Assembly: GCF_000400465.1 (NCBI RefSeq)
Contig: NW_008806290.1
Span: forward strand, 210,001 to 242,000
Source: Wallemia ichthyophaga EXF-994
Lineage: Eukaryota > Fungi > Basidiomycota
Direction: 5' to 3'
DNA: 32,000 nt
How positions within the stretch are numbered: position 1 is the first letter of the stretch; each line of letters begins with the position of its first letter. Made by a program: the position numbers and the translations under genes. Of this stretch, positions 8,414-30,954 are shown one piece after another. The notes under the pieces are model-generated. The model saw nothing but the letters and a program-made list of their open reading frames with translations. It was not told the origin of the DNA and searched no databases.

Positions 8414-11350
8414 ATGCCCCGGCTGTTTATCATACTTTCCTTCTGTCTCGTAGCATGTACGCTAGCTGTGTCTTCCTGGAGTGATTCCCGCGCGATCCCA
8501 AAAACTACTCAATACGCTTTGGAGTTGGCTGATGGCCACGCCCCACACGACTCTCTCTTCCAGCAGCTCCAGTCGCGCGATATTCCATACACACTCACGC
8601 AGTCATTCAACTCCCCTGATTTGTTTGTAGGCGCTGCGATACACTTGCAAAACTCGGACCACAGTTATCACCTCCCGTCCCTCGAATCTGTCAAGCATGT
8701 TTACCCAATCAACTCCTTTGACAGCCCAAATGCGTTTACAGAGGTGGTGAATACTGAACAGCGCAACTTGGCAGAGTCTTCCTTTACGCCCTCACTTTAT
8801 CCACTCGTCTCAGGCACTCAGGCACAGCCTTCCTTCTACGCGGTCCAAACACTGTCTCAATCTGTCTTAGACATGTCCGGCCTGGCATACGCCCACGCCC
8901 AAAACCTCACTGGTAGCGGGATCTTCATAGCCTTTGTAGACGACGGCGTCGACTATTCCCACCCGGCACTTGGCGGTTGTTTCGGTGCCGGTTGTCCCAT
9001 CTCCCGCGGCTGGGATCTCGTCGGCGACGCGTACAACACCACCAACAACATCCTCAACCCAGGTCCGCTCCCAATCACGACCTGCAAGTCACACGGCACA
9101 TCTACGCTCGGTTTCGCTGCATCCCAACTGCGCGAGCTCCCCGGCGGTGCACCTAACGCCACGTACGGCATGTACCGCATATTCGGCTGCCACGGCTCCT
9201 CAGGCGACGATGTGCTCGCGATGGGGCTTATTCGCGCGTACGAGGACGGCGCCGACATCATCAACGTCAGTGCCGGTGGCCCAGATGGGTGGACAACGTC
9301 TCTCCCCTCCGTCGTCGCCAGCCGTATAGTGCAGCGCGGCAGACATGTCGTCACTAGCGCCGGCAACTACGGCCAGCAGGGTCTCCTCTACTCTAACTCT
9401 CCCGCTGGCGGTATAGGTGTGACGCCCGTCGCTGCGCTCGACCTGCCCTACGTTCCCGTTCTCAATGCCTCCCTCACCGTCGCTGAACTGCCTGGCGAGC
9501 GCTTCCCATACATCCCCGAAGAGGTGTTCGGAGCAGGCAACGAGACGCGCAGGAGTTATGTCGTTGACGACGCATGTGGGGGCGTAAGCGCCGCCGAAAT
9601 GGGCAGCCTGGACGACCTGGCGCTCATTATCGACAGCTCCACCGATGAGTGTGACCTCTCCACCAAACTCGCCAATTTAAAGGTAGGTTGACGAGCAAGA
9701 GACGAGACTTGATTAACGCGCACTCCTCGCTCACCGCTCCACAGACAGCCAACGCATCGCTGGTGCTCATCACAGACACACACTCCAACCTAACGCAAGC
9801 GCCGCACGTGGGCGGACTCGACACAGCGCTCCTGCGTACATCAGTCGCCTCAGCGATTCCGCATAATGGCACGCTCACGCTGCACTACACGCCGCAGCTG
9901 ACGCACATCCCGCGCGGCGGGCTTGTCGCGCAGTACTCGAGCATGGGGCCGAGTGCCGATGGCTATGGGAAGCCAGCGGTGAGTGCGATAGGCAGCAACA
10001 TCCCCACCCCGGCACCAAACAACAGCTACATGATTCAGAGTGGTACGTCGTTTAGCGCACCCGTCTACGCATCCCTGCTCGCGCTCCTTCTCGAGAAGCA
10101 CGCTATAGATGATGTGCATCTCAGTCCGGAGCAAGCTCGCGCCATCATGCTCAACAGCGCCCAAAGTGTTCGGTTAGCTGTGGATGCAGATGACGGCGAC
10201 GCGTTCACTGTGCTGCAGGGTAATGGACGCACGAGTATCGCTAGAGCACTCGCCGCGTCGGCTTACGCTACACCTGATATAGTCAACCTCAACGATACGT
10301 GGGGTGCGGATAGTACGGGCGCGGGCGCTGGCGAGAAAAGCGCGCAGGTCCAGCTCGTCAATCTCTCACAAAAACGCACGACTTACACCCTCGCTCACCA
10401 CCCCGCCCTCACCGGCTACGTGCTCGAGGAGGGCACTATCCAGCCTAGCACCTATCTGCCTCCGTACTCAAACGACACTGCGACTGTGAAAATGGCGCAC
10501 AGTGTGTCTGTCGAGCCGCTCTCATCGGTAGATGTCGACATTGTTTTCACTCCGCCCCAGTGCTCCGATCATCGTCTGCCTATTTACAGCGGTTTCATCG
10601 AGTTCACAGACGCGCAGGATGTTAATAATACCCTGCACATTAGCTACAATGGTATAGCGGGCAATCTCTCCCAGATGACTATTCTCGATAACACAGACGA
10701 TTTCTTCCAGCAGGGCTTCCCGGTGCCTTTCACGTACAGAAGCAGTGACAGGACCATGTTGAACGATACAAACACGCTCACCTTTTCCTTGGAGGATGAT
10801 GATAGACCGGCACTCGTGTACAGACTCGCTGGCCCATCGCCATATTTGAGGATAGATCTCGTGGGCGCGGACACGGAGCGCAATCGCACAACTAGCAGCA
10901 TCACTATACCCGCACAAGAGAGCAATAACAATAGCAGAAGAACCAGTAGGAGCTTAGCTGATGGCGTGATGGGATGGATGGCTGATCTTCTCGGAGGCAC
11001 GAACATTAACACCAACACTAACACTCACGTTGACTCTGACGTGAAGAACAACAGCAGCACACTCACCATAAACACCCTAGGTATCTTGTACGAAGAGCTG
11101 GGCGTGTCCCGCAATGGCTTCAAGGGGTCCGGTCAGGGATCGTCTTTCTATCGTTACGACATGAACACTTTCGCAGATGGTGCACCCATCCCAACTGGCG
11201 AATACAAGTTCTTGCTCAGAGCGCTCAAAGTACACGGCGATGAACATGATAGTGCGGATTGTGGGTGGTATTGAATTTACGTGGATGCTCTACTTACAGT
11301 TTCACTCTCCAGACGAATCATGGCTGTCTGACGCGTTCAAGGTCATATAG
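8414..11350 (+). CDS. Secreted subtilisin-like serine protease (peptidase S8 with PA-like insert and C-terminal Fn3-like domain), ~940 aa. Exons 8414-9682, 9745-11260, 11313-11350
   Basis: Signal peptide MPRLFIILSFCLVACTLA. Catalytic Asp (FVDDGVDY), His (SHGTS), oxyanion Asn (SAGNYG) and Ser (SGTSFSAP) present. Introns 9683-9744 (GTAGGT..CAG) and 11261-11312 (GTGGGT..CAG) restore the family-typical end DYESWLSDAFKVI*. Confidence 0.9.
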
Positions 11351-15417: not shown

Positions 15418-18400
15418 TCACTTAAGTAGCTTATTCAATGCCTTCTCCACGTTAAAGCCCGTCTGCTCAAGTGCTTCAATGGCTTGTGGTCTATCAAAAC
15501 CCATATTGACCAACTGCTTTACCTGCTTTATATCATCATCCTCTGGTTCATTAAGGCGCGGCGGCAGATTTGGCTTGGCTGTGTTTTCTGCCTGCTCACT
15601 GCCTGGTGATTTGACGCTAAATGTCTCGCTAAAATCTACCAATGACGTCAGTCAATAGCTCAATAATAATTAACTAAACACACCATCGAATGCTTTATTT
15701 GGAGCTGCCTTGTTAGATGTACCAGGTTGATCGAAATCAGCGACGAAATCAAAGGCCTCATCATTCTCAAAGTCATTCTGATCCCCATTAACGTTACCAG
15801 CCGCAATTTGAGCAGCAGGTAGATCACCAAATGAAGTATCAAACTCATCTTCATCTTTATCATCTTTCTCATTCTTATCAAATGCCCCACTTCCCATCAT
15901 AGCTTCAAATGGATTTTTGTTGCTTGATTCTTTCTGTGCAGATGCAGATGTATCCGTTGGGAATGACGCGAAAGCATCATCGAATTCATCTTTGTTAGGA
16001 TTGAGATTAGGTGGTTGTGCTGACAACTCTGGTAATTCCTCTGGTCCCTCATCGTCATCACTTGAGACATCACCACGTTCCTTTCCTTTAGAGTGAGTGG
16101 TTGTGGTTGTGGTTGTAGGAGGTGGTGTGAAGCTGTCAAATGGTGATGAGACATCGTGCTTCTCAGCAGCAGGTGGTGGTACAATCTCAGCTGTTGACGC
16201 TGTTGGTGTGAAGCTATCAAATGGCGATGAGTCTGTAGCAGATGAATGCCCATACGCTCCCGTCGACGCAGCCGGTGCAAAGCTCTCATCGAAAGCTGCT
16301 CTAGAGTTGTCCATATTCGCCTTGTCTGACTTGCTATTGCTATCGAATCCCCTAAAAGCATCATCGAAATCAGAAACGGACACAGGTGCAGATTCATTTA
16401 CGTTTATCTTGTCGCTTGCCTTCAAATTAGCATCATCATTAGCGTCCTCTGATTTGACTACTCTGGGCTCGTTTTCACCTTCTTCCACACCCATCTTGCT
16501 GAATTGATCTTGGAAAGGTGTCAAAGCAATTCCAGTGCCTTTGTTAGACTCAGACTCCACCTCAGCGGCAGCGTTCATGTCAGTCAAATGACTATCGCGA
16601 GTATCATTAGCATCATGAGCACCGTCATACTCATCGTGGCCACCTGCTCCAGCGAACGGATCCTCATCTACCAATTCATCATCTTGAGCGCGTGTACCTT
16701 TGAATGCCTCCTCGTCTTTTATCGCGGTAGTCGCAGAAGCTGAGGGAGTGAGGCTATCGAATGGGTTTGTTGATTTGGCTGATGCAGGGCTCAAGACGCT
16801 TGAGACGTCTTGGTGTTCATGATGAGCTTCGCTGTCTGGACTGATTGGGAGGGCGGTTGCAGCAGCCATATCAAGCGCCGGCGAGAGATTCTTGTCGTCT
16901 AGATTTTCTGCAGTTGACGTTGCATCTGTTGTATCTTTTACGTTTGCTGCGGTTGTTATATCGGACCTATCAGTTGCATCTGCTGCATGCTCATCCATAG
17001 CCACTGGGGTGTCCAAATCCTCAGCCTTAACGCTTGGATGAACTCTAGAGTCTTCAATCCCCTTGAGCGTGTCATCCAACTCCTCATCACCAGGCGGAGG
17101 GAGAGCGACAGCCGGATCGACATTACTATACCTCTTGAGCTCATCTGCAGCCAAATCCCTATCACTTTCTGCCAATCTAAGCTGCTCCACTGCATCCTCA
17201 TTCTCGCCATGAGCCACCACCTTCGTCTCTCTCAACTCGGACAAGCTCTGACGCATATCAGTCGTATGTTTACTAATCTCCAACACCTTGGCTTTGACCA
17301 CTCTAGCCTCCTCCTTCTCGCGCATGTAAGCCGTCTCAAGTTCAGCTCTCTCGACTTTCAGTGCGGAAACGTCACTCTCTGCGCTGATGAGCTCATGGTC
17401 GAGGCGGCGGCGCTCGGCGGTAACTTCCGTCAGCTTAACCTGTAGGTCACTGACGAGGTGCGCTTCTGTGTCGTGCGCTTTATGCGCGTTGCTCAGTCGA
17501 TGCTCTAGATTAAGGCGCTCTGCATCTCCCGCCTCCACAAGCCGCTCTAGCTCCGCACGTCGTGTTTGGTAGTCGGACAACGCGCGGTCCGTCGCGGATA
17601 GCTGCCCTCGCGCTGCTTCAGCCGCCACTGCGTCCTCGTGTAGCTTTGTCTGCTGTACATCGGAGTCGCCGAGGAGATCGTCAACGAGTGCTGTGCGTGG
17701 CTGCGCGTGTTCGCTGGGGTTTTCGAAAGGTGATCTGGCTTGTGATTGTGGTTGTGGGGTTGATTGTGGTTGTTGTTGTTGTGGCTGTGGCTGCTGCTGC
17801 TGCTGTTGTGCAGGCGAATTCTGCCAGCCAGTCACACCCTGTTGCAATGCATTTGGCTGCGAACCGCTAAACTGCGCAGAAAGACCAGTAGACTGCGCCG
17901 ACAAGCCTGTACCCTGAGCAGACAAGCCTGTACCCTGAGCAGACAAGCCTGTGGGCTGGGTCGAGAGAGGAGGAGGAGCGCCGCTATGCTGAGGCTGCAA
18001 ATCAGACTCATCGCCCATGAGATCAAAAAGGTCGTCTGTAGGTTTGCGTGGAGTTGTAGAAGCATTAGCAGCAGTACCTGGCATTCGCGACGATGCAGGT
18101 ATTAATGAATCGGGTAAGGTGGGAGGGAGTGGATTGCCAGCGAGGCAGCGGTGGATGAGATGCATAGCAATTGCAAATTCGTCCTTGGAGAGACTGCCGG
18201 ACTTTCTGACATCCGCTAAATCCCACACATTCGCTAAGACGTCTATGGGGAGACCTGATTTACTGAAAAAGTCGACAGCTTTGTCAGCTTCCAAGACGCC
18301 GTTTCCGGAGGGGTTGAGGGATTTGTAGAAACCGTCGTAGTTGCTCTTTTCTTGAGGGGATATTTCTGTGTTGAGTGGAGTGTGTGGAGTGTGTGGAGTG

Positions 18401-19248
18401 TTTGCTGGAGTATTTTGCGTAGGTAACTGAGGTGAGTCGGTGTCACCGACAGCAGCAAATCTAACCTGACGACTTGGTGGAGGAGAACCAGGCTGAGTGC
18501 TGCCAGTTGATTGTCTCGGAATTGGAGAAGATAAGTTTCTACCCCCAGAAATCTGCTCGTAAAAGCCTTGTGGGAGTGTTTGAGGGAGACTTGCGATGGA
18601 TTTGTTCATATAACACTGAATCAAGTGCATACCAATAATGAAATCAGTCAAATCAAGTGAACCGCGATTTTGAGTGTCAGCGAGGTTCCAAATCTGGCCA
18701 AGAACCTCAAAAGGCAGTTTGCTCTTTATGAAGATATCTCTTGCCTTATCGCCGCTGAGGAGACCGTTTGTTGGACCAGAACCAGCGAATATCTTGGTAA
18801 AGCGAGATTTTTCATCGATTTGAACTGGAGGAGGTGAGTTGGAGGGGTTTGAGTGTGCAATAGGGGAAGAAACAGGTGATGAGATTGCAGGCGGAGGAGG
18901 AATACCATCGAATTGAGGAATAGGCCCAGCTGTGAGGGGAGTGAGTGGGTGTATCTACCACCAAAAACCACCAAACACACGCTTATCAACGAGATCATCG
19001 CTAACAGGCTGATTGTTCTGTACATGGCCAATCAGCCTCAAAGCCACGCTGAATCCAGGCTGATCGAGGAACCCGTTGTTGTTTCTATCTGAAAGTTGCC
19101 AGATTTGGCCCAGTTGTAAAGGGGCAAGACCAGAGTAGCTGAAGAACGCCACTGCTGATTCCCCAGATACGATCCCATTTCCCTTCTCTGCGATGGAGTA
19201 GAAGTGTGCAAACGCATGCCTCTCTGATGGCGTCAGAGATAAGTTCAT
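15418..19248 (-). CDS. EDE1: Ede1/Eps15-like endocytic adaptor (3 EH domains, coiled coil, NPF/DPF region, C-terminal UBA), ~1243 aa. Exons 19248-18981, 18929-15684, 15635-15418
   Basis: EH motifs LGQIWQLSD..NNGFLD, LGQIWNLADTQNRGSLD and LANVWDLADVRKSGSLSKDEF; UBA QLVNMGFDRPQAIEAL. Introns 18980-18930 and 15683-15636 (both GTGTGT..AG). Confidence 0.92.
17739..17808 (-). repeat. CAG/CAA-rich coding microsatellite (polyQ/QP tract) in EDE1
   Basis: Plus strand ...GTTGTTGTTGTTGTGGCTGTGGCTGCTGCTGCTGCTGTTG encodes QQQQQQPQPQQQQPQ. Confidence 0.8.
17863..17967 (-). repeat. 21-nt coding minisatellite, 5 units (LSTQPTG-LSAQGTG-LSAQGTG-LSAQSTG-LSAQFSG)
   Basis: ACAGGCTTGTCTGCTCAGGGT occurs twice exactly, with degenerate flanking units. 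Confidence 0.9.
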
Positions 19249-29829: not shown

Positions 29830-29931
29830 CCTGGTCGATAGAGTTGAAAATTTAATAAAAATATACAACAAATGGAATATAACCTGATTTACCAATGAAT
29901 AATCCCATCTTTCACTCATCTCTGCCATGTT

Positions 29932-30870
29932 TCAGTTGTGTTTCGCAAAACTCTCATCCAGCTTGAGTGCATTTATTGTCCTGAGCTTCTCCACCTACCC
30001 AAGGCATTGTGTTAGTGGTGTATGCCTCACAATACACTAACAATCCCCACCAATCTGACGAAATCTGGCTCGCGCACGACTCGAAGAATGGATTCAGTGA
30101 GCAGCTCGTCATTCTCGACGTTAACATTCACATTATCAGCGCCTTCCATCTCCCTAAATGTAGTGCCAGAGTCAACCAAGTTACATCTCCTACGTTTCTG
30201 ACTGGGAGAGGGGGCTGAGAAGCCCGTTTGGGAGTGTCTCAAAGACTGGCTGAGCTGTAATTGCGTCTGTGTTTGTAATTGTGTCGGAGGAGGCATAAAT
30301 GTACTTGACTGGCTGGCTGATGGCACTCCAGACATGCTGTTCAATCTGTTCAAATTTTCCTTTTTCCCATTTTCACATCTGAGCAGAGGAATCGTGTCAT
30401 TGGCAGCGACGCAATCGACTCCAAGTCTTCGAATACGACCTACAAACTCCATAGCCGAGGCGTTTGTCGTGAATGTTATCTGGAATCTGCCATCGGACTT
30501 GTGTGGTGGGGTGTGGGCGTAGGCTATTTGAGCTACTGTAATATACGCCACTTACATGCTTCACCATGACTATATTCTCTTTGAAAATCACCTTGGGCGA
30601 TGCTGTACCTATCTCCACTGTTTCCTGCGACTCGTTTAATGGCGCATTGAGCACACCAAGTTTCGACTTTACCATCGTATCAACGCTACCACTCTCATAC
30701 GTTATGCAAACCGTCAGCCTCCCCTTTTCCCCCTCTCGCCCATCTCTCTCCGCGTGCGAGATCTCCAGCGTTGCGGCCATCGATGGAGAAATGAACGTTG
30801 ACCAGTGTTGCGCGTCTATTTGCGACGATCTGAGATATTTCTTCAGTGGGAAACGCAGCGTAGTCGACAT
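29932..30870 (-). CDS. Rec114-like meiotic recombination protein (N-terminal PH-like domain, S/Q-rich linker, C-terminal helix), ~258 aa. Exons 30870-30673, 30624-30556, 30497-30051, 29994-29932
   Basis: Three introns (GTAAAG 30672-30625, GTAAGT 30555-30498, GTGGGG 30050-29995) give one frame. Segments FPLKKYLRS...W..F, RFQITF......EF...I and L.ESIL..V.EPDFV.LVEK resemble the Rec114 signature motifs as recalled. Confidence 0.62.
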
Positions 30871-30954
30871 GGGTTATGGATGTTGTCAATCAAGACAAGA
30901 AACACACAAGACAAAGAATCTGGAAATCTGCAAAATACATGTAAAATTACACCC

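Follow-up and report, generated by a model that had tools for sequence, protein, structure and literature searches.

We describe here a gene near the end of a 32,000-nucleotide stretch of the genome of the halophilic fungus Wallemia ichthyophaga EXF-994 (contig NW_008806290.1, positions 210,001 to 242,000 of the forward strand; referred to below as the window) and weigh the evidence that it encodes a very diverged member of the Rec114 family of Spo11 activators. The gene lies on the minus strand at positions 30870-29932 of the window, an interval that is exactly its coding sequence, from an ATG at 30870-30868 to a TGA at 29934-29932. Splicing of four exons across three introns yields 777 nucleotides (nt), which correspond to 258 amino acids (aa) and a stop codon. 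A mechanical list of open reading frames (ORFs) holds two fragments in different frames at this locus, 30397-30870 and 30027-30551. A first-pass annotation of the window had proposed a four-exon gene of ~258 aa at 29932-30870. Its coordinates and length were exact, the motifs FPLKKYLRS, W23, and RFQITF are present in the product, and the C-terminal helix string that it quoted, ESILRVVREPDFVRLVEK, is found across the junction of exons 3 and 4. The elements of the gene, in the direction of transcription, are as follows.

Exon 1, 30673..30870, minus strand: aa 1-66, with the start codon and the FPLKKYLRS and HWSTFIS motifs; conserved in the related lineages described below (L001, L002, L003, and L004).
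Intron 1, 30625..30672, minus strand: 48 nt, GTAAAG..CAG, in frame and stop-free; in the relatives, too, an intron follows VDTM.
Exon 2, 30556..30624, minus strand: aa 67-89.
Intron 2, 30498..30555, minus strand: 58 nt, GTAAGT..AAG; accounts for the change of frame from one mechanical ORF to the other.
Exon 3, 30051..30497, minus strand: aa 90-238, with the low-complexity linker between the end of the N-terminal domain (GRFQITF and helix 101-113) and the greater part of the C-terminal helices.
Intron 3, 29995..30050, minus strand: 56 nt, GTGGGG..TAG, with a CACTAAC branch site.
Exon 4, 29932..29994, minus strand: aa 239-258, VEKLRTINALKLDESFAKHN, ending in the stop codon.

Two of the three introns are also found in the GenBank model of the W. 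ichthyophaga gene (P0001). The intron 2 junction is read as VMVKH followed by xDGRFQ both in P0001 and in the W. mellicola model (P0002), and the intron 3 junction is read as FVRL followed by VEK in P0001 and as FVKL followed by VDR in P0002. The W. mellicola orthologue (P0002, 243 aa; locus L004) has introns at the same three positions, and because these are 43-49 nt long, the 48-nt intron 1 of the window gene is ordinary for the genus. Retention of intron 1 in the window gene would add 16 aa (VKSKLGVLNAPLNESQ), and W. ichthyophaga may produce the resulting 274-aa isoform. The counterparts of intron 1 in L001, L002, and L003 contain in-frame stops and therefore must be spliced. Two alternative models, one with three exons and 274 aa and the other a variant of 277 aa with a GTTAGT donor, gave way to the four-exon model in view of the obligatory intron after VDTM in the relatives.

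The best database match to the product is the W. ichthyophaga protein E3P81_01005/E3P97_01006, which is 99% identical and is labelled "hypothetical protein." This match bears out two earlier suppositions, that the host is Wallemia-like and that the gene is poorly annotated. P0001 has only 173 aa; it begins at the internal Met86 and is without the first 85 residues, and this truncated model could now be corrected. Codon 130 (30375-30377) encodes Cys in the window (LLRCENG) and Phe in the GenBank W. ichthyophaga strains (LLRFENG), the sole amino acid difference over the 173 shared residues. Upstream of the W. mellicola orthologue (L004 1-2422, assembly GCA_004918485.1) the GenBank model is an 814-aa product with a Vma12 domain and a PEX5-like TPR protein, which is probably a merged gene model.

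Five lineages were compared: the window, W. mellicola (L004), two Wallemia-type contigs (L001 and L002), and a more distant, AT-rich relative (L003). In all five the frame is intact, the exon structure and the three intron positions agree, and the gene lies between the same neighbors, a PEX5-like gene and CCDC47. Nonsynonymous divergence (pN) was 0.14-0.21, compared with a saturated synonymous divergence (pS) of 0.72-0.77, and 53 residues are invariant across the family. By region, pN was 0.10-0.18 in the N-terminal domain, 0.08-0.09 in the C terminus, and 0.19-0.34 in the linker, which is under the weakest constraint. The W. ichthyophaga gene is a genuine four-exon, 258-aa protein-coding gene under purifying selection, and the disruption in other strains that the first-pass annotation had allowed for is found in none of the lineages seen.

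The protein has diverged about twice as much as those encoded by neighboring genes. Its identity to the L003 orthologue is 27-28%, versus 53% for CCDC47, 62-76% for the PEX5-like protein, and 66% for PRELI, a rate in keeping with the known rapid evolution of Spo11 accessory proteins. A hidden Markov model (HMM) search of 1.8 billion representative proteins recovered relatives in Wallemia-type fungi only; two bacterial repeat proteins among its matches were discarded as repeat-driven false positives. No relative was found in a scan of JGI metagenomes. L003 (ENA ERZ27248899, contig k119_76084, 1723-2834) comes from an uncultured, AT-rich relative of Wallemia and encodes a 309-aa orthologue with an expanded N/Q-rich linker. 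Its PEX5-like neighbor is in part nearly unchanged, which indicates uneven evolution across the locus, and the L003-type cluster is present on dozens of metagenome contigs.

The product is divided into three parts, the second of which contains a cluster of SQ and TQ (S/TQ) motifs. Secondary structure is from AlphaFold2 (AF2) models, for which REC114 sequences were deliberately kept out of the alignment to avoid circularity.

N-terminal domain, 30375..30870 (introns within), minus strand: aa 1-130; ~8 predicted strands, helix 101-113, and a short strand, all at low confidence.
Linker, 30129-30374, minus strand: aa 131-212; low-complexity, fast-evolving, without AF2 secondary structure, and with the highest pN.
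S/TQ cluster, 30201..30314, minus strand: seven SQ/TQ motifs within aa 151-189 (39 residues), followed by a basic SQKRRR stretch.
C-terminal region, 29935..30128 (intron 3 within), minus strand: aa 213-258; predicted helices 220-231 and 233-244, with a break at E-P-D.

The predicted pattern of strands and helix in the N-terminal domain is PH-like. The seven S/TQ motifs of the cluster compare with ~2 expected from composition, and every one of the five orthologues showed enrichment over composition-matched shuffles, with P <= 0.004 in four of them and 0.025 in L003. Invariant residues in the C-terminal region include I226, F235 (codon 30062-30060), L238, and V239. Gene structure, conservation, synteny, selective constraint, and the division of the product into these parts are established features of the locus.

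The predicted layout agrees with the one that defines the Rec114 family, whose members have a PH domain, a disordered region, and, at the C terminus, between two and four helices with a conserved Phe (PMC10393190; PMC6288613). In the PH fold of the family, two antiparallel sheets stand perpendicular to each other and a C-terminal helix caps them; the N-terminal domain carries the motifs SSM1-SSM6. Rec114 binds Mei4 and Mer2 and is required for Spo11 double-strand breaks. The C-terminal helices dimerize and form a ring around the N terminus of Mei4 with the conserved Phe inside, F411 in yeast and F240 in mouse (PMC10393190; PMC6288613). As far as its predicted structure goes, the Wallemia protein agrees with this description point by point, although no single feature is unique to Rec114. 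A disordered linker bearing S/TQ motifs, as expected of Rec114, is likewise supportive yet unspecific. In yeast Rec114, two clusters together hold eight S/TQ sites whose phosphorylation by Tel1/Mec1 down-regulates break formation (PMC3694840), and the linker cluster of the Wallemia protein resembles this arrangement. Compared by description with the fungal proteins (Saccharomyces cerevisiae Rec114, PF03525; Schizosaccharomyces pombe Rec7; Sordaria Asy3), the Wallemia protein, on the basis of its predicted structure, would share the PH domain, the disorder, and the Mei4-binding C-terminal helices with a Phe (PMC10393190), and it shares their fast evolution. It differs in having no PF03525 match and in being far shorter than yeast Rec114, in which the disordered region alone is ~250 aa (PMC10393190). 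Vertebrate REC114 (PF15165; mouse PH structures 6HFG, 6NXF, and 7QWV) is nearly equal to it in length, 258 aa as against mostly ~210-290 aa in the retrieved sequences. The predicted order of the parts also agrees with that of vertebrate REC114: first a beta-rich N-terminal domain closed by a helix, then a disordered stretch, and finally a pair of C-terminal helices of which the last opens with a Phe. In contrast, the middle PH strands of vertebrate REC114 (GHFFISQG.TLLEGFSLI) have no recognizable counterpart in Wallemia.

Under a permissive hhalign setting, the Wallemia protein and vertebrate REC114 aligned from end to end with their elements collinear. The paired segments, Wallemia first, were RFPLKKYLRS/WPLKRYGRF, HWSTFIS/SWKVFES, RLTVCIT/LILTIVV, GRFQITF..A.E/RMFRVQF..A.E with a helix after it, and ILRVVREPDFVRLVEK/IRLCLMDQNFPAFVEDVEK. 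The vertebrate C-terminal motif DQNFPAFVE also falls in line, with REPDFVRLVEK in W. ichthyophaga paired with MDQNFPAFVEE in vertebrate REC114 and, in L003, the most distant orthologue, NDAEFPKLVEK compared with MDQNFPAFVED. Profile alignment of the C terminus paired VVREPDFVRLVE with CLMDQNFPAFVE (P = 0.014-0.024). Two registers are possible for this region, placing F235 opposite either F240 or F243 of the mouse protein.

Controls with altered templates and with real proteins were used to gauge this resemblance; the mouse REC114 PH-domain sequence was taken from the PDB alignment of 6NXF. Block-shuffled templates reached the real score in 4 of 60 cases for the N-terminal domain and in 0 of 60 for both the C terminus and the full-length protein. 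Real-protein decoys were cut from the products of the window's 15 other genes; among them, 3 of 139 beat the W. ichthyophaga N-terminal domain (top ~2%) and 2 of 261 beat its C terminus (top ~1%). The sum of the N- and C-terminal scores was higher than that of all 354 matched decoys in four of the five orthologues, the W. mellicola sum being reached by 3 of 354. Cross-comparisons of the N-terminal with the C-terminal segment, in either direction, were null. These rankings suggest a collinear similarity to REC114 that exceeds chance by an empirical margin of ~1 in 100 to 1 in 350.

A number of results weigh against the Rec114 assignment. The margin just given is far below the standard for homology in a genome of ~5000 genes. 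The Pfam REC114 models PF15165 and PF03525 gave no match to any of the five orthologues even at E <= 10, and phmmer and profile searches of PDB sequences returned no REC114 and nothing else of relevance. An HMMER profile of 147 vertebrate REC114 sequences scored ~0 bits on the Wallemia proteins, and hhalign against vertebrate REC114 gave P = 0.003-0.016 at a probability of only 3-9%. The reversed REC114 template for the N-terminal domain scored 23.8, versus 22.8 for the real one, and hhalign in global mode, or in local mode on concatenated N- and C-terminal segments, did no better than with decoys. The comparator in these direct tests was vertebrate REC114 only. No bridging sequence was present among the best 120 of 743 matches to a vertebrate REC114 alignment, all of which were from birds, reptiles, and frogs, and the search of 1.8 billion proteins likewise yielded no intermediate to known Rec114. 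AF2 confidence was poor, with a predicted local distance difference test score (pLDDT) of 37 for the full-length protein and 41 for the N-terminal domain, the alignment consisting of Wallemia sequences only. However, distant Rec114 orthologues typically share well below 10% pairwise identity and are notoriously undetectable by sequence (PMC10393190), and the missing significance is therefore weak evidence against Rec114. Established plant and nematode orthologues also fall outside the Pfam REC114 models (PMC5695089).

Structure comparison gave a similar picture. Foldseek searches with the full-length AF2 model returned unrelated matches, and a search of the PDB with the N-terminal domain model returned none that was significant (best E = 0.08, template modeling score ~0.25). 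About 30 of its top 50 matches were PH-superfold domains, all nonsignificant (E >= 0.08; model pLDDT 41). These included the EVH1 domains of Spred1, PP4R3, ENAH, and VASP; Dcp1; the PH domains of pleckstrin, APS, and USP37; and Sec3, SSRP1, RanBD, PTB, NECAP, and CARM1 (2OQB). CARM1 2OQB has been named the closest structural neighbor of the mouse REC114 PH domain (Kumar et al.; PMC6288613). The REC114 chains 6hfg, 6nxf, and 7qwv were absent from the top 50, a further point against the assignment. We take the list as soft support for a PH-like fold in the modeled domain, with nothing in it specific to Rec114.

On balance, we consider it plausible but unproven that the gene is a highly diverged Wallemiales orthologue of Rec114/REC114, with a probability of about 55%. 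This is the best available explanation, and it rests on resemblance without a significant match. The Rec114 identity put forward in the first-pass annotation is partly supported: it is favored by the three-part layout, the collinear motifs, the decoy ranks, and the S/TQ cluster, but not by Pfam, by hhalign (below 10%), by the reversed control (which scored equally), or by the two poor AF2 models. The profile and structure comparisons that it recommended produced no significant REC114 match, but they also revealed no other PH-fold family that claims the protein.

A rival that we hold to be quite possible, though short of probable, is a Wallemiales-specific protein unrelated to Rec114, in which a PH/EVH1-like adaptor domain is joined through a disordered, S/TQ-rich linker with a nuclear localization signal to a short helical tail for oligomerization or peptide binding. 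Such a protein would act in a nuclear pathway outside meiotic break formation, for example as a target of ATM/ATR DNA damage signaling. The restriction of homologues to Wallemia-type fungi and the lack of a significant sequence link to any Rec114 family fit this proposal, as do the best, nonsignificant Foldseek matches, which are not REC114 but the EVH1 domains of Spred1, PP4R3, and Dcp1. Both an S/TQ cluster and a KRRR stretch are generic traits of nuclear ATM/ATR substrates, and W. ichthyophaga is reported to be without much of the meiotic toolkit (PMC3849046). However, the protein agrees with REC114 in overall size and predicted layout, and its N- and C-terminal motif matches are collinear, with a sum that beats every decoy in four of five orthologues. 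The low identity among accepted Rec114 orthologues further blunts the argument from missing significance, and no Pfam EVH1, WH1, DCP1, or PH model matches the protein.

That last result also bears on the idea that the protein belongs to another known PH-superfold family, for example as a diverged EVH1 protein, Dcp1 or another, or as an adaptor of the RanBD or PTB type, which we regard as very unlikely. The Foldseek matches named above (Spred1, PP4R3, and ENAH EVH1, Dcp1, RanBD, and PTB) and a weak match to PF23076 PH_FT_C point in this direction, and the EVH1/WH1 adaptors (Spred1, PP4R3/Falafel, Ena/VASP, and Dcp1) have, like the predicted Wallemia protein, a small N-terminal beta-sandwich and helix followed by disorder. 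But at E <= 10 the Pfam models of all these families, and those of classical PH proteins, matched none of the five orthologues, although such models normally recognize fungal members, and the FxxLVE helix pair and the S/TQ cluster are foreign to the EVH1/WH1 families. The PH_FT_C match (E = 0.15) was confined to the intron-retaining version and was lost in the spliced protein, and the Foldseek matches are all at E >= 0.08 from a model with a pLDDT of 41. A nonfunctional locus, whether a chance pair of ORFs or a decaying pseudogene, is effectively refuted. It might be suspected from the two ORF fragments in different frames, the truncated GenBank model, and the unusual GTGGGG donor of intron 3, but five lineages have kept the spliced frame open, with introns at matching positions and conserved synteny, pN is far below pS, and 53 residues are invariant across the family.

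As a Rec114 orthologue, the gene would be a new and highly diverged member of a family already known and would not represent a new kind of system. Membership in the family is inferred, and so is each step of the following mechanism, for which yeast and mouse Rec114 serve as models. Partners in the break machinery, for example proteins of the Mer2/IHO1 and TopoVIB-like types, would dock onto the PH-like domain at the N terminus. Through its SQ/TQ motifs, the disordered linker would be a target of feedback by Tel1/Mec1 (ATM/ATR). The two C-terminal helices would dimerize around Phe235 and clamp the N-terminal helix of Mei4, and the assembly of the Rec114-like dimer with Mei4 would activate Spo11.

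The possibility of a Rec114 in W. ichthyophaga touches on whether this fungus is sexual. The species was for a long time taken to be asexual: of eight meiosis-specific genes, the genome paper of 2013 detected just three, Dmc1, Mer3, and Msh4, and it concluded that reproduction is asexual (PMC3849046). SPO11 was undetected in that study, which is another point against a Rec114 assignment, and HOP1, HOP2, MND1, and MSH5 were likewise reported missing (PMC3849046). The survey searched the predicted proteome at a BLASTp cutoff of 1e-40 (PMC3849046) and would therefore miss diverged or mis-modelled genes like the candidate described here. The same paper reported a near-complete meiotic set in W. 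sebi/mellicola (PMC3849046), and a 2019 population study described rapid linkage disequilibrium decay, at ~1.3 kb, and a MAT locus (PMC6738226). In a BLAST comparison that covered Cryptococcus and Basidioascus, REC114 was likewise entered as absent or undetected (PMC4500085).

The first-pass annotation held that an intact copy of the gene supports cryptic meiosis, which goes a step beyond the present evidence. It is conceivable, but in our judgment unlikely, that a Rec114-type Spo11 activator has been kept under strong purifying selection throughout the Wallemiales, including W. ichthyophaga, which would imply either a complete but unrecognizably diverged break machinery and cryptic meiosis or a Spo11-independent role. 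Were the gene a true Rec114, the inventory known for Wallemia would gain a meiosis-specific break factor. This would show that such factors escape BLAST-based toolkits and would be useful for the debate on Wallemia sexuality. The value of the finding is limited by the insecure family assignment, and one more diverged Rec114 would leave the understanding of the pathway unchanged.

The gene is closely flanked on both sides. The PEX5-like gene lies upstream on the same strand, with 84 nt (30871-30954) between its stop (30955) and the ATG at 30870. CCDC47 lies downstream in convergent orientation, with ~100 nt (29830-29931) between the two stops. Because of this tight spacing, the promoter must overlap the 3' end of the PEX5-like gene, and the two 3' untranslated regions probably overlap. 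The intergenic spacing in L001 and L003 is like that of the window.

The other genes of the window are fungal housekeeping genes: Tra1, PHAF1, a WD40 protein, mitoribosomal S11, a subtilase, a CLC channel, an EH-domain protein, Nop14, Leo1, a histone deacetylase, BCAS2, PRELI, CCDC47, and the PEX5-like TPR protein. The subtilase gene (Peptidase_S8 and Fn3-like; 8414-11274) has a GC content of 0.55-0.62, versus ~0.43 nearby. A frameshift considered at 9688-9691 within it was rejected, as the ORFs are joined by an ordinary intron of ~62 nt (GTAGGT..CACAG) near 9683-9744. A second GC-rich stretch, at 17001-18000 (0.56), has a strong negative AT skew and lies inside the EH-domain (Pan1/Ede1-like) gene at 15670-18651, where it is probably a proline-rich, low-complexity coding region.

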